This document shows positions 9,001 through 62,288 of a stretch of DNA of 64,000 nt, one piece after another. Source of the stretch: Cycas panzhihuaensis (lineage: Eukaryota; Plantae; Cycadophyta); the NCBI GenBank assembly GCA_023213395.1, contig CM041465.1, forward strand, positions 86,125,741 through 86,189,740, in the 5' to 3' direction. The notes beneath the pieces were generated by a model. The model searched no databases, was not told the origin of the DNA, and saw only the letters and a list, made by a program, of their open reading frames with translations. The position numbers were made by a program, and so were the translations under genes. How positions within the stretch are numbered: position 1 is the first letter of the stretch; the number at the start of each line of letters is the position of its first letter.

Positions 9001-10189
9001 GTAGTATGTGGTGCTTATGATGATAACTTTGATCATATTTAGTGGTATAACCCCCTAATCTAAGATATTTGGCATACTCCCTTTTAGATCTTCAGTAGGC
9101 TTCACTAAAATTCATAATGGATATTTATCGCTTCATTCTTAGTTAATCAAAGAAAGTTGGGCTACATCTTATATTTAGCTTGTGACTCGTCAGTACTTGA
9201 TAGACCTTTAGTTTCTTTTCCTTAAAACCACCTTGTATAAAATTTAAAAATTTTGCACCACAACTTATTTTTTAAAAAGTTATTTTGTCTTTCAATTAAA
9301 CTTTTGGGTGTATAAGGAAAGATATTCTGTTATAGTTGTCTCATAATTTATACTTTACTCCTCTTTGTAAAAATATTCTGCTATATTTTGAGTGCTTTGC
9401 ATGTTAAAGATTAGGTTAGCATGCCTTTTTAATTTCTAAACCTTCCAACTTTTTGTATTGTATTAAGTTTATAATTCAATGATATCTTTTACCTTAAAAA
9501 AAAGAAAAAGATTTATATGCATGCATTTATACATACATGTGTTTCCATCCATCCTTGTGATAAAGGTTAATTAATAACATAACATAATATAATATAATAT
9601 AACATAATATAATGATATTCTATATTCTCTTCTCTTATCTTATAATATTACACTATTTTGTATGGTATTACATTATATTATATTAAATTAATTATTATGT
9701 CAATGTAAAATAATACTTTCTTAAAAATTATATATATTTGTCACTTTTAAGAATAGTTAATGATATGAAATGCCACTTTTTCACCACAAATAATATTTAT
9801 ATAATAATGTCTCATGACGATTACTCTCCATAAATTCTCCATAAATTCAACTTTGTATAAGATTTAAAAAAAAAAGATTTGTAATTTTAAATTTTAAATC
9901 ATTATGTAAGCAACTTGCTAGGACCACCTAGAAATAATATCATTAAAGGTACAAACCACTTAGAATCACCCCAAACTGGGTTGTTCACCTACCCCCTCGT
10001 CTACCCCATATTTTACTCTCATTTAAAACCCTTGTTAAAAATTTCAACATACACTTATTACCTAAGGAATCACTTTCTAGTTGTTCGTGTTTATCTTGTC
10101 TTCTTGTGAACGTCTTGAACACGCATTGGCGTTTAGACGCAAACGTGCGGAACACGCATTGGAATTTAACCATAGTAAAGACGCCTAAT

Positions 10190-10295
10190 AACACCAGGGC
10201 GGGGTTAGGGTTACGCGAGAACACCAGGTTTCGGGGTTAGGTAAAGAGTACGAGGCCCGAGGATGTAGCGGACCCCAGCGTGGCTCCTTATATCT
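10190..10295 (+). promoter_or_regulatory. Putative Pol II promoter of the MIR482 locus (telo-box-like GGGTTAGG repeats; TATA-like CCTTATAT 10286-10293)
   Basis: CpG-retaining island in AT-rich DNA. Two ~30-nt units aacaccagg..cggggttagg at 10189-10248; TATA-like box about 70-100 nt upstream of the hairpin. Confidence 0.55.
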
Positions 10296-10354
10296 GTGTA
10301 ATATTGGAGAGTTGTGGTGAGCGCTTGCCGAAGAAGTATTATCTGTAGGTTGCT

Positions 10355-10475
10355 GAGAAGGATGGCATGTGGTCTGTAGTCTTCAGGAGTGGGAGGAACG
10401 GAGAAGACTTCTATGGAGATGGATAGTCTTTCCTACGCCTCCCATTCCTATCGACTTCACTACACATCTGTTTTC
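10355..10475 (+). ncRNA. MIR482: miR482/2118-family precursor hairpin; predicted mature 22-nt miR482-3p 10427-10448 (UCUUUCCUACGCCUCCCAUUCC), star about 10388-10409
   Basis: 10385-10409 pairs with 10425-10449 (4 mismatches, a few G:U) and the lower stem extends (agtc/gact, tgtggt/actaca). The 22-mer starts with U and is the exact reverse complement of GGA ATG GGA GGC GTA GGA AAG A = GMGGVGK(T), the NB-ARC P-loop targeted by miR482/2118. Confidence 0.93.
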
Positions 10476-10515
10476 AATCTACACGCTCGCTCTTCTATTC
10501 CGTCGTATGATTTCA

Positions 10516-10590
10516 TGGCAGAGGGTTTCTGTGAAGGCTAGTCTTGCCTGCACCGCCTAAACCTGTTGCTTTCGCTACACATCCTTTTTC
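10516..10590 (+). ncRNA. MIR482: Second, tandem miR482-like unit (22-mer UCUUGCCUGCACCGCCUAAACC 10542-10563) with an atypical/deleted 5' arm
   Basis: Reverse complement reads GGT TTA GGC GGT GCA GGC AAG A = GLGGAGK(T). The preceding loop-like segment (ttctgtgaaggctagtct) and 3' flank (tttcgctacacatcctttttc) are homologous to those of hairpin 1 at a ~115-nt offset. Confidence 0.7.
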
Positions 10591-10625
10591 TTTCCACATT
10601 CACGATTCTACCTCTCCTGTCGAAC

Positions 10626-10634
10626 AAGGTAGGA
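10626..10634 (+). other. Putative 5' splice donor of pri-MIR482 (AAG|GTAGGA, GT at 10629)
   Basis: Consensus-like donor just 3' of the hairpins, followed by an abrupt switch to T-rich, intron-like sequence. Confidence 0.45.
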
Positions 10635-10991
10635 AGCATACGTCATGTTTAATGGCCTTAATTTTTCTAAATGCCTGAGAAATGTATTCTTTATTTTTGT
10701 TATAAATTTTGTTATCTATGAAAGTATAGGCGGTTCTTTTGATCCGTAGATGGTTTTCTTAGACCATATCTTTTAGATCTGTAGTTGATCTCGTTCTCGG
10801 TTCAATACGAGAGTCTTTTGTTAAACTTTTCTGTTATGTCATCTATGCAGAACGCATGCATAGTTTCTAGATGAGTAGCGTGTTTGTTATTCCGGGTTTT
10901 AACCTTTTCTGTTTTTAGCTATTTCTGTTTCTCAATTCGTGACAGAGGTTTTGTTTTTGGTGAGCCCCTAAGTTTTTGTTTTTTTCCTAAA

Positions 10992-11039
10992 TATTATTAT
11001 TATTATTATTATTATTACTACTACTACTACTATTATTAC
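10992..11039. repeat. (TAT)n/(TAC)n compound microsatellite
   Basis: Direct read. Confidence 0.95.
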
Positions 11040-11094: not shown

Positions 11095-14000
11095 TTTTAG
11101 GGGTTTATTGTTCTAACGTGTTTGCGATTTGTTACATACCAAGGCTGAGTTCGTTACATACCAAGGCTGAGTTCGCCAGCTAGGGTTGTACTTCATAGAA
11201 CAGGGTTTCGGTTTATTGCAGGTAGAATGTGTGCACAGTTTTTATGTGTCCAATTGGATCTATACGTTCGGCCGTCCTGGGATGTAATATCATGTTGTGA
11301 TTCACGTCAAGTTTGCCAGCTGAGGGTTAGATTTTATGTTCCTAAGAACAGGGTTCTAGTTTTTCACTTTTGGTAGATGTGTTTTGCTTTTATGTATCCG
11401 ATTGCATTTGAATATGAAGTAATATAATTGTTCGTTATTGTGTTTTAATTCCTTTATTTATTTATTTATTTTATATGCCTTCTATTTTTGAGTAACCATT
11501 TTTTGTATCCATTTGTATTTGAATACGCAGTAGCAGTGTGGATTATTACGTTTTAGTTATTTTATTTATTTATTTGTTTTCAATTTTTTAGTAATCATTT
11601 AATGTATCCATTTGCATGTCAATATGCAGTAGTATAATTCTTTTGTTTATTTTTTTGTTTGTCTCCTATTTTGAGTTTCCATTATTTTGTTGAGTCCAAA
11701 TGCCTAATTAGCTCTAGTTTTGTTTGTATTGATTATTCTCAGCCAATGAGAGATTCAATTGGCTTAAGAATTATTTTGGCATGATGAAGATTGAAATGTT
11801 TTTTGCGTTTCATTATGGATGGGGGTGATTTTCTGTAGATTTTGATTTTAGCAAATACCAATTAATCAACCTTAATTAGAATTTTTTAACAAATGATTGA
11901 GATTGGGGGATTGTTGTTCAACAAGATTTTTGGACTGGTTGAGTGGAAGTGGCCTATCATCTATAACATGTACCTAAAAATATCTTTTGAACTTTTCTGT
12001 TAAGTGGCATTGCATCATTTTAAATGATGAGATATTTTGACCACCATTATCGTTGCAATCCCATTGAATGTATGGTTAGTGTGGCGTCGCAATTTAAGTT
12101 AATAATATGCATTGGTATGTTGCATATGCATTTTTCTGTTATATGCATATTTCATACAAAAGCGTTTTCTTCTTGGGAAATGTATGTTGCATTTGCCACC
12201 TTAATGGATAAACATAATGAGTTTTCTTGTGGCAGTTACCCTAATACTTGGAGGGATTTTTCATATTATTGTTAGCTTTTATATGTGAGGGAAATGCGTC
12301 CTAGTTCTGTTTTGGCAACCACTTGAGTAGTGGGTTGATATATTTTGGCATTTTCCATTGTGTATAGAGTGTATGGAAAGCTTTGGAAGTCTACACAGGA
12401 CTGAGCTGGGTGGTTGTGTATTGTAAAAATATGCTAGTACTAGCCAAATTTTTGTAGAAGTTGGACCTCTTCTTGTGCAGGACAAAAATTGATTGCCCTA
12501 AGCTCAGGGGTTATTCATAGTTAACTTGGAAAGTAGTTATTTCTTGTGCCCAGGTCTATAGAATCATGTGGATGTTTGAAAGAGTAGTAATCAAAGACTT
12601 CTATTAAGGGGAACACTATGTGTATCTGATTAATGTACTTAGCCAGAAATGACAAACCAGTAAGCTAAATTAGAACAAATGTAACTTATAGAGAGAAAGA
12701 GGCCAGTAAGCTAAATTAGAACAAATGTAACTTATAGAGAGAAAGAGGGCAAGAAGGGTGCTGTTCACAAGTAGTTTTTAATAGGCATGTGCCTTAGATC
12801 TGTGAGAGGCTAGGTGAATAGAAAATAAATGGAATTATAAAAGGCTCTTAGATCAACTGAAAAAATGTTTGACCTTCAATGTTTTTACTAGGCATTTTTG
12901 GTATCTTAAAAATTATTGCTACTCGTTATTGTGAAGTTTTGAGTTTGTAGTGTTTGGTTTTGTTCAATATTTGACTTGCATGGTAATGGTGCAAGAAGTG
13001 CTAAACCAATTCACTCTAGCACAATTTAAATGCTTTTTTTGATCTACCCATGCAATTTTTTTTTTAGTGTATATTTTAATTCAATGTTTTGGTTCCTTAA
13101 TTGTTGCTGGTTTTGACTTTTACTATTCTTATACTTTATTTGAAATTGCTATAATACATGGGGGCCATGGACTAATCTTCATTTCTGCATAAAGGATGGG
13201 GTGTACCCCTTTTCTTGAGTCTATTTTAAAAAAAAATGGTGATGGCTGGATAGGAGTGATCACTATTTGGAGTTGTATTTATTTTGCTTTTTGTTTAGGT
13301 TGTGATAGCTCTTTGAGAACTAAATTTTTGTTGGTTTTTTTAAGAGTATGTGACCCAAGGCTTTTATTTATTGATGGATGGGAGTTATCATGAATTGGAA
13401 CTTGCATTTATTTTGCATTTTTCTTTTGGTCGTGGTGACTGAAAATTTTATTGTTTTTATAGTATATGTGGCCCAAGACTCTTATGGTTTGGGTTAGACG
13501 ACTCTTTGGTGATTGATTTTTCAACATTTTTTTCTTTAGTAGTATATGTTGCATAAGGCTTTTATTATTTTGATTTGGGGTTGGTGGCTCTTTGGGAATC
13601 ATCAATTAAGGAGTATATGTGGCCCAAGATGTGTATCACTTTGGTTTGAGTTTGGTGGTTCCTTGAGAATTGGAGGACTTTGGTCCTAACGTGAGGTTGG
13701 AATAGTGATTTCTTTGTAATCATGGAATATATATGGGGTAAACTTATTTATGTTGAAAATAGGTTGCAAAATTGGTAAGTTTCTTTTTGACAAACCTTAA
13801 AAAGATAAGGATTTTATTCACAAGGATTTTACAACGGGAGTTAAAAAAAAATTGCTGTATTGATTATTAATATAAGTAGTAATTTAAAAGATTGCCAGGG
13901 CAGGTAGATTATGTTAACTTGAGTTTTGAGTTTTTAGGTTATTCTTCATTTCTCTTGTCATTATTTTCAATTACCTAGGTAATGAGTAGTTACTTTGGTA

Positions 14001-38747: not shown

Positions 38748-41700
38748 CTAGCTACCATAGATCATATCCTTCTCAACCAGAGACAAAAGGTCCCTAGGGA
38801 AATCACATCTCCACACTTGATCCCTCTTGTTCCTCACCCCCCAGTTTGCCAAAAAATCTGCTGCTTTTTTACCTTCTCTCAGAGTGTGTCTTATACAGAC
38901 ATCTGACAAACCCTTAATAATCTCTTTGGCATGTTTGATTATAGCATGAAATTTCCAATCCAGGAGGGCCACTCCTTTTAGCGAGTTTAAAACAACCTCT
39001 GAGTCCCCCTTAATCACTAACCTCTGGATGCCCCTATGCGGGCTAAGTCGAGGGCTTTAAGCATAGCATGCATTTCCACATAGTTGTTCATCTGGTTCTC
39101 ATAGTAGTCTGCAAAGGCCCAGATGAGAGAACCTTTACTATCCCTATAGGTTCCCCCACCCCTAGCTTCACCTGGGTTCCCTTTTGCTGCCCCGTCAAAA
39201 TTAATTTTGATCCAGGGCTCCTCTGGTGGGATCCATCTAGTACTTCTGGGTTTAGACGCCACTATTTCAGGTTCTATACCCTATTTGAGCAAAATCCTGT
39301 TCTTTAACAGGGTTATGCGTTTTTCCTTAATGTTTCTAATGTTTTCTCTGATGTCCAAACATACTGTGTTATAAATGGCCATCTGGTCCTTCTCTTTTCC
39401 CTGGAAAATCCTACTGTTCCTTTCTTTCCAGATATTCCATGCCAAAATCAGGAGCGTATTCTTCCGGTCTGGTGAGGGTATTACTTTTGAATGGGCTTTG
39501 CCATGCAAGCCAAAGGCCAGCTGTCTTTTGCGATAATGTCCAGCACACTTCCAGTTTTCCAAGCAACATCCTCCAAACTTCCCTTATGAAAGGGCACTCT
39601 AGGATGATGTGATCAATGGATTCCTCCTCTTTGCAGCATAAAACACATCTGTTCGCCAACATAAAGCCTCGCTTTTGAAGGTTATCAACAGTGAGGATTT
39701 TGTTCATAAGACAGGTCCACCAGAAAAGAGCTATTTTTGGAATGAGGGGGAGCCTCCAGACACCTTCTAGCATTGGGTTTTTCTTGTCCCCTCTTTTTAG
39801 GCATAAGTATTGGTAACTCTGTTGCATTGTGTACTCCCCTGACGAATTAGAGGGCCATACCATCGAATCCTGCGAAGGAGTTCTAGGGATATAACTCTTA
39901 CCTAGAATCCTTTTGATCTTATTGAGACCCTCCTGCAGGCTGCCTAGCCCATGGATATCCTCAAAGTTCCTCCAGATCCTACTTCCTTCTCTCCCAGTCC
40001 AATAATCTTTAATCAGATTGCCGTATTCCCTAACATAAGGACCCATTAGAGGCACCAGGTCTAGGAACTCCTTCAGAGCCTTGTCACAACACCACACGTC
40101 ATCCCAAAATCTGATGGATTTGCCATCACCCAGTCTCCATTTTAGGCCATCCCTGATAGCTGCCTATGCTTTGAGGATGCTCCTCTGGATGGTAGAACCA
40201 GCCGATGAGACACTGCTATCCAAAAGGGAGCCTCCTTGAATATATTTTTTAGAAAGGATCCTCTCCCAAAGTCTCTCCCCACCTTTGAATAATCTCCACC
40301 TAAGATTTGCCCCAAGGGTGACATTGAAGGGAGAGAGCCTTCACAAATTGAGACCACCGGCCAATTTCAGAGTGCATACTTTGCTCCAACTCACTAAATG
40401 AATCATGTCTTTACTTTCTGATCCAAACCAGAGGAATCTTTTCTGGATTGATTCAATAATATCTGAGATACCCAGCAGAACCCTAAAGATGGACATCCAA
40501 AACACTAGGATGCTCTAGAGAGTAGAGGCAACTAGCTGGAGTTTTCTAGCTAAGCTCAGGAGGGTACCTTTCCAGCCAGCTAACTTTCTTTGCATTCTAT
40601 CTAAAAGAGGGTTCCACATATCTTTGGACATCTTACCAATAAATAGGGGCAAACCCAGGTAAATTGTGGGAAGCTTTTTTATGTCCGTACCTAAGATTCT
40701 GCTAATCCTACCTTGGATATAGCCCGGGGTATTTATGAAAAAGACATTACTCTTCTTAAGACTTATCTTCTAGTTTGTGGCCTTCTCAAAATGCCCTAGG
40801 ATGTCTTTAAATCTGGAAGCCTCTCCTACTGTCACCTTCCCAAGGAGGATTTTGTCATCTACAAATTAATGGTGAACCACATTGTCCATCCTCGACATTG
40901 ATTTGATGCCGTTTAGGGACCTAAGCCTCCTAGCGGACTCTAGGGTTCTACCTAGCAGCTCAGCCATCGTGATGAATAAGAAGGGAGAAAGGGGATCTCC
41001 TTGTCTCAACCCCTTGAATCCGGGGAAGAACCTAGAAGATGAACCATTGATAATAACAGAGAATTGTAGATTCCCAATGCACAGTTTAATCCAGGACCGC
41101 CAAGGTTCCCCAAAGCCAAATGCCTCTAGGCAATCTAGCAGGCATTCCCAGGAGACCCTATCAAAGGCCTTCGTGAGATCGATCTTGATGAGCATCGCAG
41201 GCTCCTTCCTCTCGGCAACTGAGTGAATTATTTCATGGACAACAATATATCCATAATATATCTGCCTGCCTCGAAGGAACCCATCCTGATTGTGGGATAT
41301 AATGTTTGGCATAATTCTCTTCAGTCTGTTGACCAGGACCTTAGTTAAAATCTTGTATTTAACATTACAAAGGCTGATGGGACGAAACTCTTCCATCCTT
41401 TTCACTCCTCCTTTTTTAGGAATGAGGACAAGGAATGTAGTCTGCCATTCCTGTAGCATCTTTTTGTTTGTGTAGAACTCCTGCAAAGCTTCCATTAAGT
41501 CCCCTTTAATAATATCCCAATATTCTTGGAAACAACCTAGAGGGAATCCATCAGGGCTAGGAGCTTTGTCTTTCTTCATGCTAAAGAGAGCTGCCCTGAC
41601 TTCCTCCAGAGTGAATGGAGCAGTTAACTGCACATTTTAAGCTTCATTCACCAGCCTAGGGATGTTGTTTAGGAAGTCTTTTCTGCTTTCCATGTCCCCG

Positions 41701-42941
41701 TCCTGGGGTTCAGTGAATAGATCCTTAAAGTATTTGTTGGCCAACTCATTCATTCCCTCAATAGAACTAATAACTGAGCCGTCTTCCTTTTGAAGACTAG
41801 AAATTCTATTGCTAGCTCTATGCTTAACTATAGTCATATGGAAAAATTTTGTATTCCTATCACCTTTATCCAACCAAAGAGCCCTGGATTTCTATCTCCA
41901 GAGTATTTCTTCTCTGGTGAGAATCTCATCCAGCTTCTCAACCAGCTCTTTCTCTGTCTTATCTAACTCAGGGGATCTGCCCGTTCGTTCAATCCAATCC
42001 TCTATATCTTTCAGATCACTGATAGTTTTATCCTTTTACTCATGAATATTTTGGAAAACCTCCTTATTCCAAGCCTTAATTTGTCTTTTAATCCAATCAA
42101 GCTTCTTCAAAAATCTGTACATTGTGTGACCTTTGATTTGAATCCGCCACCATTCCTCAACCCTATTCCTAAGATTGGGGTGACGAAGCAACATTAGCTC
42201 AAACCTAAAGGGGGACCCAATAAATTTGCCTGGATCTGAAAATTGGAGCAAGAGAGGGGAATGGTCAGAACTTGTCCTCAGTAACGCCTTAAGGGTGAAG
42301 TCATTAAAGCTCCTCATCTAGTCATAATTGACTAGCACACTGTCCAATTTAATTTGAATTAAGTCATTCCCCAATCACTTATTTGACCAGGTAAAGGATG
42401 CCCCCCTGAGCTTAACATCCTCCAAGCCCCCCTGCTGAAGGAAGTCATTAAACTCTCCCATGTTGGTTGTCCATCCACCAGTGCCTCCTCTCTTATCACC
42501 CAAGGACAGCACCGAGTTGAAGTCTCCCGCCAGCAGCCATGGTTGTTGGCAATCCCTATGGGCCTCTAATAGTCTGTCCCAGAGTCTCTTCCTAGCCTCT
42601 TGACTATTTGGAGCATAAACATTTGTGGCTAGCCAAGATAGGTTGTTGCTTTTATTTGTTAGCCGAATCGATATGAAAGATCTCTCTGCCAGGAAGAGTT
42701 CTCCCGACCATATCGACGGATTCCATAGGACCATTAAGCCCCCCACTCCTTAGGCATAGTCGATCTCAATACTTTCAGCAGTCTTCCAAATTTTGTTCTT
42801 GATCCTTTGGCCATTCTCCTTATTCATTTTAGTTTCCTGCAAGAATATCAAATCCGGAAAATGTTTATTTCGCATATCCCTTATAATCCTATGCTTCGAG
42901 GGGGTATTGAATCCCCTGATATTCTAAGATATTAATTTCAT
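38748..42941 (-). pseudogene. L1 ORF2 (endonuclease, RT, zf-RVT, RNase H), disrupted
   Basis: NVYAPN, WLLAGDFN, SDHSPL, FRPISLCN, KIDLTKAFDRV, GLRQGDPLSPFLF, RCVLCCKEEESIDHI, KINFDGAAKGNPG. Confidence 0.95.
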
Positions 42942-44854
42942 TTCTTTTTCCTTTACTTCTAGACTTCAGCAGGCTCTCCTTTGGGAGGCTCTTTGCCTGC
43001 AGTACTGGATCTAAGGGTAGGCCCTTCTAGAAATACTTCCTTAAGAGTTTTCTGGCCGCCTTGGTCTACTTGGGCAGTCGTTTCTTTCTCTCTTAGTAGC
43101 TTCAGAGGTGGCCTCCCTACCTTCTTCTCAGCTCCTACATCTGGCTACTTTTTCTGGGACATTATCGGTTGTGGTATTAGATCTAGGTCTGGCTCTCCTA
43201 AATCCTCTAATATGGGCGCTGACTCCTCAACCCCTACCCTCTACCTCTGAATCTCAGATTCACTAGGAATAACATCAACCTCTGCGGTAGAGGACAAACC
43301 TAACCTTTTCGCGGCTTGCTTATCCCTCGCCCGCTGTGGTTCAGGGGGGATAGTTTGTATCTTGGCGGTAGTCTCAATAGGGGGAGAAACTCCTGTACTA
43401 ACCACACCAGCTTGGCTACCCAGAGCCATAAAGGTCTGTGTAATTTGCTCTCCTTCCTCTAGGAGTGAATCCTCCTCATTAGGGTCAAAACCCAGATTCC
43501 CAAGAGGGGACTCAGCATCCTTCGTGTGATCTGCAGGTTCTGGTACCACCTCTTGATCCTTTTCTTTCTTTTCCTGGAGATTTAGTACTAGGGGTCCCTT
43601 ATTATTCTCATCCGTTGGAGGCTGAACCCTTGGGCATTTTTGGGGCAGGTGCCCCAAGATTCTGCAGGTGGAGTATCTTATGTGGTCCATTTCATAAATC
43701 AGCGGCTGCACCCAACTCTCATCCGGCATATCCATCCAGATGTCGTCTAGGAGGGGTTTATCAAGCCGTATTAAAGCATAGATCCTAGCGTTAATGAGTC
43801 TGCTCCTATTCTTCATCGCAGAATCAACTGCTAGAAGATGACCCACCGCTTTTGCTATACCTTTAAATACTTCTGGGTTCCAATGGTGTAATGGGAGGCT
43901 CGAGAGTTGAATCCATAAAGGGGCTTGTTTAATTTTGGGAATAGAGGGATCAAAGTCCCTATGCCATTTCTCAAGAGACAAGGCTTTCCTGCCAAACATC
44001 CATGGCACCTTGAGCAGGATACTGGACATATCTTTGTATGAAGAGAATTTTAATAGCACACAGCCCTTGGGCATGGCTATTACTTCCACGCTTCCTACCA
44101 TTTTCCATTTAGTTCTCGTCCAACTCCTGATAGTCTTTAGACCCGATCTAGGTCCCGAGAATCTGCTAACTAGCGCTTCTCCCGAGTTTCTGCCTTCTCT
44201 CCACAAGAGCTAGAGGTATTTTCAGTCTAACTTTGTTATCAACAACCACTGGTGTTAGGTCGAAAGTTTGCTCTTCATTTGATTTCAATGCATCTCAGTA
44301 AGATTTCCTCGGGGACAGATTGGAGATCTGAGTCTGGTTTTGAGGGATATGATCCATTACCATTTTTAAATATTAAGGACAGCAAAGAAGAGCCTGCCAA
44401 AAAAATATATGCATACCATAGTTAAAGCCTGCTCAGCTGATATCTTCGTTTTTGATTTCTTGGTCCCAAATAGAAAGTTGTTGGCCTGTAGTACCTCTGT
44501 AGATCTACCTTCATGACTCAACCCCTGTCTCCTCTTCCACTCGGGTTTCTCAAAAAGCTTGTCTATCTTCAAGCAGGAGCTATTATCTGACTTGAGCCGC
44601 CTTCCTACTAACACTATAATGTGCCACAATGTTAGTCAATCCAGAAGAAGCCAAAGAAGAAGGCTCTGTGTTCTCTGGCTGTTACGCCAACAACTACGTC
44701 TCCATTCCACTTTCGTCGGTCCGTCTTCCTTCGCAGGTAAGTCTATAGGGGGAACGACCCCAACAGAAGCCTTGCGCAGGGCCCTAACTCCCTTGCCATG
44801 TCCGTTCGATGGACGCCATCGCGCCCCAGTCCACGCTAATCCTCCCGCCACCAC
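42938..44854 (-). pseudogene. L1 ORF1 (DUF4283-like + zinc knuckle), disrupted
   Basis: ORF 43241-44206: PWMFGRKALSLEKW..APLWIQLSSLPLHHW..CRILGHLPQKCP. A TGA overlaps the ORF2 ATG (ATGA). Start approximate. Confidence 0.88.
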
Positions 44855-46273
44855 TCTGAAACCCTAACAATCGTAGGTTCGCTCTCCGTTCCGTTCGCTC
44901 TCCGTTCTGTTCACTCTCAGAAGTTGTTCATGAGATCTATTCCTGATGGGCTCTTCCTAGATGTCCATTAGTCCATGATATTTTTAGAAAAGACCTAATT
45001 CACCTCGAAGATGTCGAGCAAAAGTCTCCAAACCTCACCTGAGTAAGAACACTGAAGGAAAATATGATCCACAGATTCCTCCTCTTTATGACAAAGAATG
45101 CACCTATTTGTCAGCTGATATCCTCTCTTATTGAGATTATCCATTTTATTCCTAAGACAAGTCCACCAAAAAATGACAATCTTTGGAATGAGGTCCAGTT
45201 TCCATACCCCTTCCAAGGTCTCATTCCTTTGATCCCCACTTTCTGAATAGAGGTAGAGGTATCCCTGCTTCACTGAGTACTCCCTAGTTTGGGTTAAGGG
45301 TAAGATTATTGAGTCCACCATGTTTGTTTTAGGTATATAACATTTTCTAAGAATCTTTCTAAGTTTGGTGAGACCTTCTTGGGGGAAATACTTCCACTGA
45401 AGTTCCTCAAAATTCCTCCATCCTTTTCTTCTTCCCCTCCCATTCCAATAGTCCTTCACATGAATACCATATAATCATTCACAAGGGGCCTAAAGGGGGG
45501 CTAATTCAGGACAATTATTTAGACCTTTTTCACTACACCATGTATCCTCCCAAAAGTTTATAGTATTCCTGTCTCCCAAGCTCCGCTTTAGGCCAGCCTT
45601 CATCATGGTCTTGGATTTGAGAATGCTCCTCTAAACTGTTAAGCTAGAAGGGGGAAATGTATTGTCAAGGAGAGAACTACCCTGAAGATACTTTTGAGTT
45701 AAGATCTTTTCCCACAGGCCCCCTCTACCTTTGACTAGTCGCCAACTGAGCTTAGACACAAGGGAAGAATTAAATAGTGATATTCTTATGAGATTTAGTC
45801 CCCTAACCCATCTCAGTATACAAACTTTACTCCAACTTAGCAGGTGGATTCTATCCTTCTCCTCAACCCCAGACCAAAGGAATCTTTTCTAGATGGACTC
45901 CAAGATAGTAGAAACGTTGGGTAACATTCTGAAAATAGACATCCAGAAAACTAGAATACTTTGTAAAGAGGTAGCCACAAGCTAGAGCTTCCCAGCTTAG
46001 CTAAGAAGAGCCCCTTTCCAACCAGCCAACTTTCTTTGAATCTGATCAATGAGGGGATTCCAAATATCCCCTGTTATCTTACCCACAAATAGGGGTATAC
46101 CAAGGTATGTAGTAGGTAGCTTCTTAATTTCCATCTCTAAAATTCCACTGATCCTTCTTTAGGTATTCCTTGGGGTATTTGTAAAGTAAACTCTACTTTT
46201 ACTCAAGTTTACCTAATGGTTCATGGCCAGTTCGAAGCTTCCGAGCGGTGGGGCTCTGCTGCCAAGGGGGCAG

Positions 46274-58700: not shown

Positions 58701-61700
58701 ATAGGCGAATGAGCATTGTTTCCTATGAATGCCCACCTACTAAACAATCCTATCAAACCAACTAAGTGAGCCATGGTCATGTGAAGGGGGATAAAGGCCC
58801 TTCCACCTATGCCTCGGCTTGTTTTATCGGCATTCCTGATTCATCTCATTCTGAAGGAGATCCCACATCTTCTTCCTCGAGCCTTACCTGTTTCGCTCCT
58901 ATTGGTGTTATAAGCTATGGGTACCTTGCCATATTTAGTAATGACGAGTCCCATGGTGAGGACGAGGACCTTCCTCACCCTGTTTTCTTCCTTCATACTA
59001 GTAGGAGGCACTCTTCTTGTTTTAGGTCCCAACCTAGAACCCCTCTCATTTTGGAGACCGATCACCCCCTTGTATCATATGTTATTGCTTGCGTCGATCC
59101 ACCAATCCTTGAGTCTTCCTCTTCACCGCCCCCCGCGGGTGATGAATCTATGGAACTTCCTTTTGCCCCTTATGAGGGGCTCCTTCCTGACTCTTCCTTA
59201 GAGTCTTTTAGGGATGTTGGGCAGCCCGCCGACCACCATGGTCCTATCACTCCCACTTCCTCTTACACCTTGTCTATTTGAAGTAAGGTCATCCACGGGG
59301 TGGATTACTTTAAAGATGATGAGGCTCTACTTGAGCACTTAGTGGGCTCCACACCCAACCTTCCTTCTGGTCACCATAGACTTGGCCATCAGAAGGTCTT
59401 AGCGATTGGGTCCACTCTTGCCGACCCAATCCCATCTCCTGTTCCATCTCCTCTTGTTGACCTTATCCCCCTTCATTTCAAGGAGGGGAATACCATGTGC
59501 ATGGGGGTAACCTAGGATATAGTCCTCGCCCTAGGTAAGGTCATTAAGGTGGGGGCAGAATGCTCTCCTAATGAGGTGAGAGAATACTCCCTTTTATTTT
59601 AAGAGTTCTGAGATGTTTTTGCATGGGACTACTTTGAAATGAAGGGAATCGACCCCTCCATTGTCACCCACAACCTTACCACCATTCCTGACGCTCACCC
59701 CGTGTGCCAAAAACAACGCCCACTTCATCCTAAACTCTTAGTCGCTATCAAAATTGAGGTTGAGAAACTCCTAGATGTAGGACTCATTGCTTTTATTGAC
59801 TACCCTAAATGGGTGTCTAACATCATTCCCATGGCTAAAAAGAATGAGACCATCCAGATATGCATCGACTTCCATGACATCAACAACATGTGTCTTAAGG
59901 ATAATTTCCCACTCCCTTTTATTAATCAGATCATCGAATGAACCACTAATTTTAAAGTCATGTCCTTGATGGACAGCTTCTTTGGTTACAACCAAATTCA
60001 AATCTCTCTCGAAGATTGCCATAAGACGACCTTCACCACCTTGTGGGGTACCTTCTTTTACAAGGTGATGCCCTTCAGATTAAAAAATGCAGGTGCCACT
60101 TACCAAAAGATGATGCACTTCATCATTCACGACCTTATCAATAATACGTTGGAGGTCTTTATGGACGATATGATGGGTCTCTCGCGTGTTAGAGCCCATC
60201 ACCCCTTAGACTTGTGGGCCATCTTCACACGATGCTGCAAGTACTACATAAGTCTCAACCCACTCAAATGTGTATTTATCATCACTTCTGGAAAACTCCT
60301 TGGTTTCCTTGTGTCGAAATAAGGAATTTAAATCGACCCTGACAAGGTCAAGGTGATCCTTGACATACTGCCGCCTAGAACTCAATGACAGATTAAGTCA
60401 TTTCTGGGTAGGGTTGGATTCCTTAGGCATTTCTTGGAAAACTTCATTGTGAATGCCAAACCTTTTACTAACCTATTAAAGAAGGGAGCCTCGTTTGTTT
60501 GGTCAGCTAAGGCCCAACAAGTTTACGAAAGACTTAAGGAAGCTCTTGCTTTCACTCTAACATTGGTACCTCCTCACTTTGATAGGTCTTTCATCCTATA
60601 TACCTCAGTGACCGATGAGTCCTTGGGTGCTATGCTATCCCAGGAGGATGATTTGAGAGTCAGAAAGGCTATTTACTTCATTAGCCGCACCCTCGTGGCT
60701 ACCGAGCTTAACTACTCTCTAGTCGAGAAGGAATGCCTCTCCTTAGTTCATACAACTGAGAAGTTTAGGCACTACTTGCTCGGAAACACTACCAAGGTGA
60801 TAGTTTCATCCGATCCCTTGCATTATTTACGTACCTGTTTTAACCTGACAGGTAGGGATGGTCATTGGGCCATCCTCCTTCAGGAATTTGATCTCCATAT
60901 CGTCAATAGAAAATCGAAGAAGAGGATGGTAGTGGTGGAACAACTTGCAGATGCCCCTGTCCCTAACTCGTTCAATGCCCCCGTTGATGACTCCCTTCCT
61001 AATGAGTCTATCTTGACTATTCAAGGCACTTCTTCCCATCCACTCATTGACAGTGAGTGGTATGGTGACATCGTGCGGTACCTTACTCAGTAGTAGTACT
61101 ACCCAGAAGCTAGTAACAAGGTCAGGTCACGCATTCAGGCCATTTCTAGGTAATACTTCCTTATGGATGAAGTATTGTATAAGAGATCCTTTGACGGGAT
61201 CCTCCTCCATTACATCACTCCCGATGAAGTAGACCAGATACTTCATGAATGCCACCATGGCATTTGCGGGGGCCACTTTGGGGGCCAATCCATGGCCCAA
61301 AGGATCCTTCGTATGGGCTACTATTGGTCATCCCTCTTCAAGGATGCCCATGCCTATGCCTTGAGATGTCGGCAATGCCAAGAGCATGCCAACATCTCCT
61401 ACATGCCTTCCAAGGCTCTTCATCCCATCATATCACCATAGCCCTTCTCCCAATGGGGTTTAGACCTCATCAAGACCATATCACTGCCCTCTTCATCGTA
61501 GCACAAGCTCATCTTGACTACCTCAAAATGGGCAGAAGCTATTCCTTTGATTACTACCCCTGATAAGATAATAGCCACTTTCGTCTACCAATATATCATT
61601 GAAGCTTTAGAATTCTGGATGTCTTGATTACAGACAACAGAACCCCTTTTTGTAACAAGGAGGTGGACGAACTTGGTGAGAAATTCAAGATCTCTCACAA

Positions 61701-62288
61701 AACCTCTTCTCCTTATTACCCCTAGGCAAATGGTCATGTTGAATCATTCAACAAAATTCTTATCAATATCCTAAAGAAAATTGTTACTCAATCTCAGAGA
61801 GATTGGCACCTCTAGCTCCCTTTTGCCTTATGGGCTTATCGTACCTCTATCCATGTAGCTATGTGAATGACTCTGTTCTCCCTAGTTTATGGATCGAGGT
61901 GGTACTCCCATTGGAATTCAAGATCCCCTCTCTACAAGTTTCTCTTCGAGGTCTTATCGATGAGGAGTCTATTCGTCAGGCTCACCTCTTAGACCTCGAA
62001 ACCTTGGATGAGAGGTGTTTAACTGCTTACCAAGCTAACCTCGTGTCTAAAGCACGCTCGCAAAGGACTTACGATAATCACCTTCGTTCTCACCCTTTAT
62101 ATCCTAGGGACCATGTCCTGAAGCTGAAATATCTTCATGACTGCTTAACTAAATTCAGACCCAAATGGATCGGTCCCTTTACTGTTCTCGAGAGTCTCAA
62201 TAATGACGCTTATAGGATCACCACCCTAGAGGGCCTTGAATTTGAGAAAGCCATTAATGGGAAATTCCTCAAAATATTCTATACATGA
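55726..62288 (+). pseudogene. Gag-pol polyprotein relic (gag, PR, RT, RNase H, integrase)
   Basis: RT: ICIDFHDIN..KDNFPLP, GYNQI, YKVMPFRLKNAGATYQ, VFMDDM. RH: SLGAMLSQ, NYSLVEKECL. INT: HHGICGGH..CRQCQ, KWIGPF, INGKFLKIFY. Many C>T/G>A stops. Confidence 0.95.

Follow-up and report, generated by a model that had tools for sequence, protein, structure and literature searches.

We propose, with a probability of about 0.7, that the locus described here is the remnant of a bicistronic MIR482 gene whose second cistron was recently lost by deletion. The cluster remnant occupies 236 nt of the window, that is, of the whole stretch of 64,000 nucleotides that was analysed. In the scenario that we favour, a complete hairpin unit would have been duplicated in tandem long ago, giving rise to a two-hairpin MIR482 gene; the mature sequence of unit 2 would have diverged into TCTTGCCTGCACCGCCTAAACC, mainly opposite the third-codon bases of the P-loop, and the cluster would then have been amplified into paralogs. 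More recently, the lineage or haplotype to which the window belongs would have undergone a deletion of at least 76 nt at 10533|10534, in which unit 2 lost its 5' flank, its star arm and part of its loop. The second 22-mer (miR-2) would still be carried by the same RNA as hairpin 1, deprived of a duplex partner.

The first unit is a canonical MIR482 precursor. Hairpin 1 (10370-10470, plus strand) folds at -42.8 kcal/mol (z -4.03) and displays what is expected of a MIRNA gene, a stable hairpin with a mature/star duplex of about 21 bp. Indeed, the 22-nt miR482 TCTTTCCTACGCCTCCCATTCC (miR-1; 10427-10448, plus strand) lies in the 3' arm and forms a duplex of -32.8 kcal/mol with its star in the 5p arm (10386-10407, plus strand). 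The miR-1 sequence is identical to Aang-nmiR046 3p of Araucaria (PMC6448024) and to pab-miR482c_1ss11TG of Cunninghamia (PMC12027079). As miR-1 is a published, expressed small RNA in both plants, the genome is probably that of a gymnosperm, and we regard hairpin 1 as a bona fide MIR482. DCL1 would process the intact unit 1 (10370-10470) in the ordinary way and so yield the published 22-nt miR482. No Rfam family matched at threshold anywhere in the window; the MIR2118 family reached a sub-threshold 24.5 bits on hairpin 1, for a gathering score of 85, and copy 2 received no score at all. Plant MIRNA precursors diverge fast, and the sub-threshold result therefore weighs little. The MIR2118 score was slightly higher on the minus strand (24.5 versus 19.6 bits), and the antisense of the hairpin 1 star (10386-10407, minus strand) fits the miR482 pattern with one mismatch. 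Such a minus-strand signal is unsurprising because any near-perfect hairpin gives one, and we assigned the locus to the plus strand because the published mature miRNA sits there.

The sequence-only reading had described a second copy of the loop, mature sequence and 3' flank, and this duplication is real. Local alignment of 10402-10497 with 10520-10610 gave a score of 63, as against 23.6 +/- 4.2 for shuffled sequences (maximum 42), and the identical positions amount to 15/22 for the mature sequence, 8/11 for the loop and 20/28 for the 3' flank. The unit 2 remnant (10520-10610, plus strand) thus duplicates three parts of unit 1: the end of the loop, the mature sequence and the 3' flank. Within it, miR-2, a second miR482-type 22-mer (TCTTGCCTGCACCGCCTAAACC; 10542-10563, plus strand), is star-less at this locus and lies 115 nt downstream of miR-1 on the same plus strand. 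It is followed by a 3' flank (10564-10600, plus strand) that contains the common motif gctacacatc and would have formed the 3' side of the lower stem in the lost hairpin 2. Moreover, miR-2 fits without mismatch the family pattern UCUUNCCNNNNCCNCCNANNCC (22 nt, initial U, antisense to GxGGxGK(T)), which has three matches in the 64 kb for 0.05 expected, namely miR-1, miR-2 and the antisense of the hairpin 1 star.

The differences between the two 22-mers agree with those announced from the sequence. They number 7 out of 22 (miRNA positions 5, 9, 11, 14, 17, 19 and 20); read in the target sense, positions 3, 9, 12 and 18 are each the third base of a Gly codon, positions 4 and 6 turn Met into Leu, and position 14 turns Val into Ala, so that the antisense of miR-2 reads GGT TTA GGC GGT GCA GGC AAG A. 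Of these seven differences, five occupy one of the seven third-codon positions (hypergeometric p=0.0136), and the 12 bases that make up Gly positions 1 and 2, Lys and the first base of Thr are all spared (p=0.0007, for a set picked post hoc), in keeping with the claim that the invariant Gly and Lys bases had been preserved. The miR482/2118 family is known to diversify opposite third-codon bases, spruce included (Zhang et al. 2016, PMC5026261; for the spruce family, PMC4651229), a trait that has been read as miRNAs tracking synonymous diversity in P-loop sites (PMC5026261). Since codon-periodic divergence is a known trait of the family, it suggests that unit 2 was a working miRNA through much of its history, and for the same reason it is no argument for anything unusual at this locus.

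Judged by its sequence, miR-2 would be a processed miRNA aimed at NLR P-loop sites; the window itself holds no NLR gene. The proposal that it had been re-tuned to a GLGGAGKT P-loop is not required by the data. A canonical GMGGVGK site with suitable synonymous codons pairs with miR-2 except for one mismatch at position 19, with G:U pairs at positions 9 and 17, and a new amino-acid target class therefore does not follow from the sequence. Sites with Ile/Leu add a mismatch at position 10. Neither miR-2, its halves or its complement nor the motif GLGGAGKT was found in the searchable literature, and all of them are likewise absent from the supplements of the Cunninghamia, Araucaria and Cryptomeria small-RNA papers. 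A scan of metagenomes for the exact miR-2 gave no match. A degenerate pattern for both 22-mers retrieved 56 loci there, four of them from human-gut assemblies, although we do not consider these four to be human DNA; the loci are mostly GC-rich and none has a hairpin partner, and as a consequence they fit microbial P-loop genes read in antisense.

Part of the region 10200-10700 is present in 20 public runs from six coded organisms, and another nine runs from organism A, which belong to three studies, contain 0.68-0.72 of its sequence words. Four runs, X2 (organism A), X11 (organism B), X12 (organism C) and X16 (organism D), were compared with the window over 10000-10990 at a likeness of at least 80%. 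All are Logan contigs (k=31) of unrecorded kind, and strand, ends and abundance lie beyond what such contigs show; comparisons of loose ends rest on 30 letters per contig end. In all four runs, several contigs that differ from the window by approximately 3-18% also start at 10533, behind ...TTCTTTAACTCGGTAATATCGTGAACTGAG. Among the differences listed for these paralogs, none lies within 10533-10563, and the first is at 10564. This constancy across paralogs and four organisms, together with the wobble pattern, upholds the idea that miR-2 was under constraint, and miR-2 is apparently an unreported 22-mer of the miR482 family common to several paralogs and at least four related organisms.

The paralogs also bear on where miR-2 might be made today. 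The summed depth of the X2 contigs is 462 at 10544-10577 and 63 over hairpin 1. As several diverged and more deeply covered paralogs encode miR-2, the plant probably still makes it from paralogs elsewhere. In these paralogs, no star was found within the 39 nt directly 5' of miR-2. For hairpin 2 to be intact, its loop region would therefore have to measure at least about 40 nt, more than in unit 1. The paralogs presumably have an intact star. Loose ends in X2 and X12 point to another class of paralogs, which joins the window at 10464 behind CCTTCCATTTCGGCTCCTATTGCTTTCACT. In this class, the 3'-flank motif ctacacatc follows a third sequence, far more diverged, that takes the place of the 22-mer and whose antisense does not read as a P-loop.

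The abundance of such copies can also be read differently. The sequence from 10533 onward might be a multi-copy repeat, transcribed or NLR-derived, that holds no miRNA cistron, and the constancy of miR-2 would then reflect recent amplification instead of selection. Contigs at 82-97% likeness are indeed numerous and cover 10533-10650 and 10708-10901 in all four runs, with a summed depth several-fold that of hairpin 1. The silence of Rfam on copy 2 and the failure to find miR-2 or its halves in the searchable literature or in the Cunninghamia, Araucaria and Cryptomeria supplements would also suit a repeat. However, homology to the MIR482 precursor of unit 1 extends over the loop, the mature part and the 3' flank, the differences between miR-1 and miR-2 are codon-periodic (p=0.014), and the antisense frame past the P-loop core reads KTSL.. 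and then meets a stop, which is not NB-ARC. We thus hold a repeat devoid of a cistron to be unlikely. An antisense fragment of an NLR pseudogene was rejected as the main reading on similar grounds, the frame past the P-loop core not being NB-ARC-like and the flanks being homologous to a MIR482 unit. A 63-aa ORF that spans the locus had no relative in the protein collection searched.

Evidence for a deletion comes from relatives that retain DNA missing from the window. In organism C, record 8 of X12 follows the window over 10290-10533 with three differences, leaves it at 10533 and continues for 76 further letters. In organism D, record 16 of X16 does so over 10355-10533 with one difference and continues for 30. 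Beyond 10533 both begin with GATTTTGA(A/G)AAGG(A/G)ATGTCTCTGTAGTCTG. Their identity over unit 1 is 98.8-99.4%, that is, a divergence of about 1% from the window. On the other side of the junction, record 9 of X12 covers 10533-10905 with five differences in 373 nt and carries 50 other letters ahead of 10533. The extra letters found in organisms C and D can be aligned with 10354-10382, the part of the hairpin 1 5' flank that immediately precedes the star, with scores of 29-30, whereas shuffled sequences give 16 +/- 2.7 and 0-1 out of 500 reach the observed score. Moreover, the extra letters of X16 pair with the 3' flank of miR-2 (10564-10600) at -20.2 kcal/mol, for -11.5 +/- 2.7 in shuffled sequences, 2 of 500 of which reach this value. 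Those of X12 pair with the same flank at -13.4 kcal/mol, a value attained by 47 of 500 shuffles. For comparison, pairing between the 5' and 3' flanks of unit 1 gives -18.2 kcal/mol. According to this homology and to the lower-stem pairing, a complete second unit begins in the relatives, with 5' flank and lower stem succeeding each other as expected.

The extra DNA at 10533 in organisms C and D therefore indicates that the window has lost at least 76 nt, comprising the 5' flank and the 5' arm of hairpin 2. We estimate that the deleted piece also took part of the unit 2 loop and measured about 100 nt. The deletion junction is at 10533-10534 (plus strand), where the window and organism A are joined directly and the relatives have at least 76 nt. 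This gives good support to the suggestion of a recently crippled cistron, the homologue of the unit 1 5' flank being found, in near-identical contigs of two organisms, exactly at the site of the missing arm. The sequence-only reading had put the loss at about 20 nt of the 5' arm, which is too small, since the relatives hold at least 76 nt more at 10533|10534. It had also taken ggcagagggttt for the base of the lost arm. In the relatives this stretch precedes the 5' flank of unit 2, and its pairing with aaacctgttgct is probably fortuitous, as is the match of 10520-10530 to the end of the unit 1 star, for the same reason. The contigs of organisms C and D could stem from a very close paralog and not from the orthologue, and organism A could also carry an intact allele.

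The same contigs bear on the possibility that copy 2 was star-less from birth, through a partial tandem duplication of 115 nt, the extra DNA of the relatives being a later insertion or belonging to a close paralog. In the window, the homology between the units does end inside the 5' arm (10402/10520), and orthology is beyond proof by contigs. However, a random insertion would provide neither a homologue of the unit 1 5' flank in the right order nor lower-stem pairing, and on either side the flanking contigs from organisms C and D share 98.6-99.4% identity with the window. Furthermore, a close expressed paralog of unit 1 was not seen in organism A (X2, 10340-10440, at least 80% likeness), and a 22-mer that had long been star-less would not be expected to keep its codon periodicity or its identity among paralogs. 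We therefore give little credence to a partial duplication, and retain the loss of a complete second unit.

Organism A, represented by X2, is probably the species of the window. Its contigs cover 10329-10990 and beyond with no difference (record 23, 10329-10562; record 25, 10534-10990 and beyond; plus strand, as deduced from the mature miRNA), and no X2 contig covers 10000-10328. A TATA-like element, ttatatc (10289-10295, plus strand), located about 35-40 nt upstream of the first covered base, is a candidate core promoter of the pri-miRNA. Because upstream cover is missing, because the contig set amounts to 49 Mb and because of this TATA-like element, the cover probably represents an RNA that starts near 10329, a pri-miRNA with both 22-mers. 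Record 23 spans hairpin 1 and all but one of the 22 letters of miR-2; it extends 29 letters past the join, two under the bridging rule, and stops where the next 30-mer is common to paralogs. No further X2 contig of at least 80% likeness covers 10340-10440, and accordingly a close expressed paralog of unit 1 is not seen in organism A.

If the X2 cover is RNA, then hairpin 1 and miR-2 share one transcript. The polycistron that had been postulated would thus be borne out by one window-identical contig of organism A spanning hairpin 1 and nearly all of miR-2. As in a polycistronic MIR482 cluster, two homologous units are arranged in tandem, on one transcript provided that the cover is RNA. The second unit is not a complete hairpin, since its 5' flank and 5' arm are absent from the window. 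An assembly error at 10533|10534 could also have accounted for the absence of the arm. We rejected this explanation, since independent contigs of organism A reproduce the same junction with no difference.

The copy was indeed star-less when the window was searched for a partner. The stretch 10490-10600 folds at -21.8 kcal/mol with a z of -0.77, and the first bases of miR-2 lie in a 7-nt loop, as had been noted. No complement of miR-2 with three mismatches or fewer exists in the 64 kb. Within +/-2 kb, the best partner is 10226-10250 at -24.7 kcal/mol, for -22.8 +/- 2.5 (minimum -27.7) with shuffled 22-mers. Copy 2 thus lacks the star-arm duplex of a plant MIRNA gene processed by DCL1. DCL1 requires a miRNA/miRNA* duplex of about 21 bp with a flanking lower stem or loop. 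With no such partner for miR-2, it is most likely that miR-2 is no longer diced from this locus and that the cistron is dead.

A more surprising outcome would be either that miR-2 is freed without an arm of its own, for instance through trans pairing with star transcripts of paralogs, or that it belongs to an unreported gymnosperm miR482 subfamily directed against Leu/Ala P-loop NLRs, whose cistrons are gained and lost among very close relatives. We consider the chances of either to be slim. As for release at this very locus, miR-2 could come from a local stem-loop, from pairing with the miR-1 star arm or with the distal arm at 10226-10250, or from dsRNA formed with an antisense or paralogous transcript. 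An unchanged miR-2, probably co-transcribed with hairpin 1, would be compatible with such a route, as would the weak duplexes with 10226-10250 (-24.7 kcal/mol) and with the miR-1 star arm (-23.0 kcal/mol). However, shuffled 22-mers find duplexes as good as the best of these within the 4 kb searched, none of the contigs of the probable transcript reaches as far upstream as the distal arm (they begin at 10329 in X2 and at 10290 in X12), and the miR-1 star prefers miR-1 by far (-32.8 kcal/mol). The local fold (z -0.77), with the 5' end of the miRNA in a 7-nt loop, and the general need of DCL1 for a duplex point the same way. The non-canonical processing offered earlier as one of two outcomes thus finds no usable duplex partner for miR-2, and is very unlikely. 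A nested or switchable precursor built on the distal arm at 10226-10250 was discarded, its -24.7 kcal/mol being within the shuffled range and its position upstream of the probable transcript. The segment 10190-10249, just 5' of the probable transcript start, is a tandem pair of 30 nt (aacaccagg..ggggttagg), the second copy of which is this distal arm.

The surroundings of the locus are those of plant DNA rich in retroelements, with a step in GC content at 38 kb (about 0.32 before it, about 0.45 after it). Broken LINE-like ORFs (RVT_1, two zf-RVT, DUF4283) occupy 39411-45459 on the minus strand, and broken gypsy-like ORFs (RT_RNaseH, Tf2-1 SH3) occupy 60434-62288 on the plus strand. Closer to the locus, a (TAT)n microsatellite (10992-11038) lies downstream of the contig cover, which runs about 37 nt past 10990; a perfect 22-nt tandem duplication is found at 11131-11175 and a 99-nt tandem repeat (1.8 copies, 81% matches) at 11453-11632. 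On the upstream side, a DNA contig of organism B (X11, 10000-10167) lacks 14 letters at 10136 (10136-10149), and this gap indicates indel variation in an upstream repeat-like region, where gaacacgcattgg occurs twice.

A recently truncated bicistronic MIR482 gene would offer a snapshot of MIRNA gene death, in which a cistron has been lost within about 1% divergence while its mature sequence is intact and probably still transcribed. It also carries a warning for annotation, as a perfect match to a mature sequence does not amount to a functional MIRNA locus. The loss of a cistron is an ordinary event in the fast-evolving miR482 family, a small case of MIRNA turnover that holds no surprise for the specialist. 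The general picture of the family is unchanged, and miR-2 becomes a candidate NLR regulator for testing.

Several described systems can be compared with this locus. Araucaria Aang-nmiR046 (PMC6448024) has a 3p 22-mer identical to miR-1 and a different 5p arm, and miR-2 is listed neither in that paper nor in the Cunninghamia one (PMC12027079). Like the members of the miR482/2118 superfamily, miR-2 is a 22-mer with an initial U, located on the 3' arm side and antisense to GxGGxGK(T), with 5 of its 7 differences from miR-1 at third-codon positions. It departs from the wobble pattern in the other two, which affect first or second codon positions and, in the literal antisense, replace Met by Leu and Val by Ala. 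In flowering plants such as Aquilegia, polycistronic miR2118/482 clusters are described as neighbouring hairpins that are complete (PMC8368212); the neighbouring family members are alike, and the present locus is a degenerate derivative of such an arrangement. The closest described case is MIR482-MIR1448 of Populus and the Salicaceae, in which MIR482 was duplicated in tandem and the copy, carried by the same transcript, became a second miRNA, a divergence ascribed to co-evolution with targets (PMC3475693). Here too, a tandem MIR482 duplicate has a diverged second mature sequence and would be carried by the same transcript. In contrast, both poplar hairpins are intact and both miRNAs are made, whereas hairpin 2 is deprived of its 5' arm at the present locus. 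The lineage also differs, miR-1 matching gymnosperm small RNAs, and the two loci go back to independent duplications.
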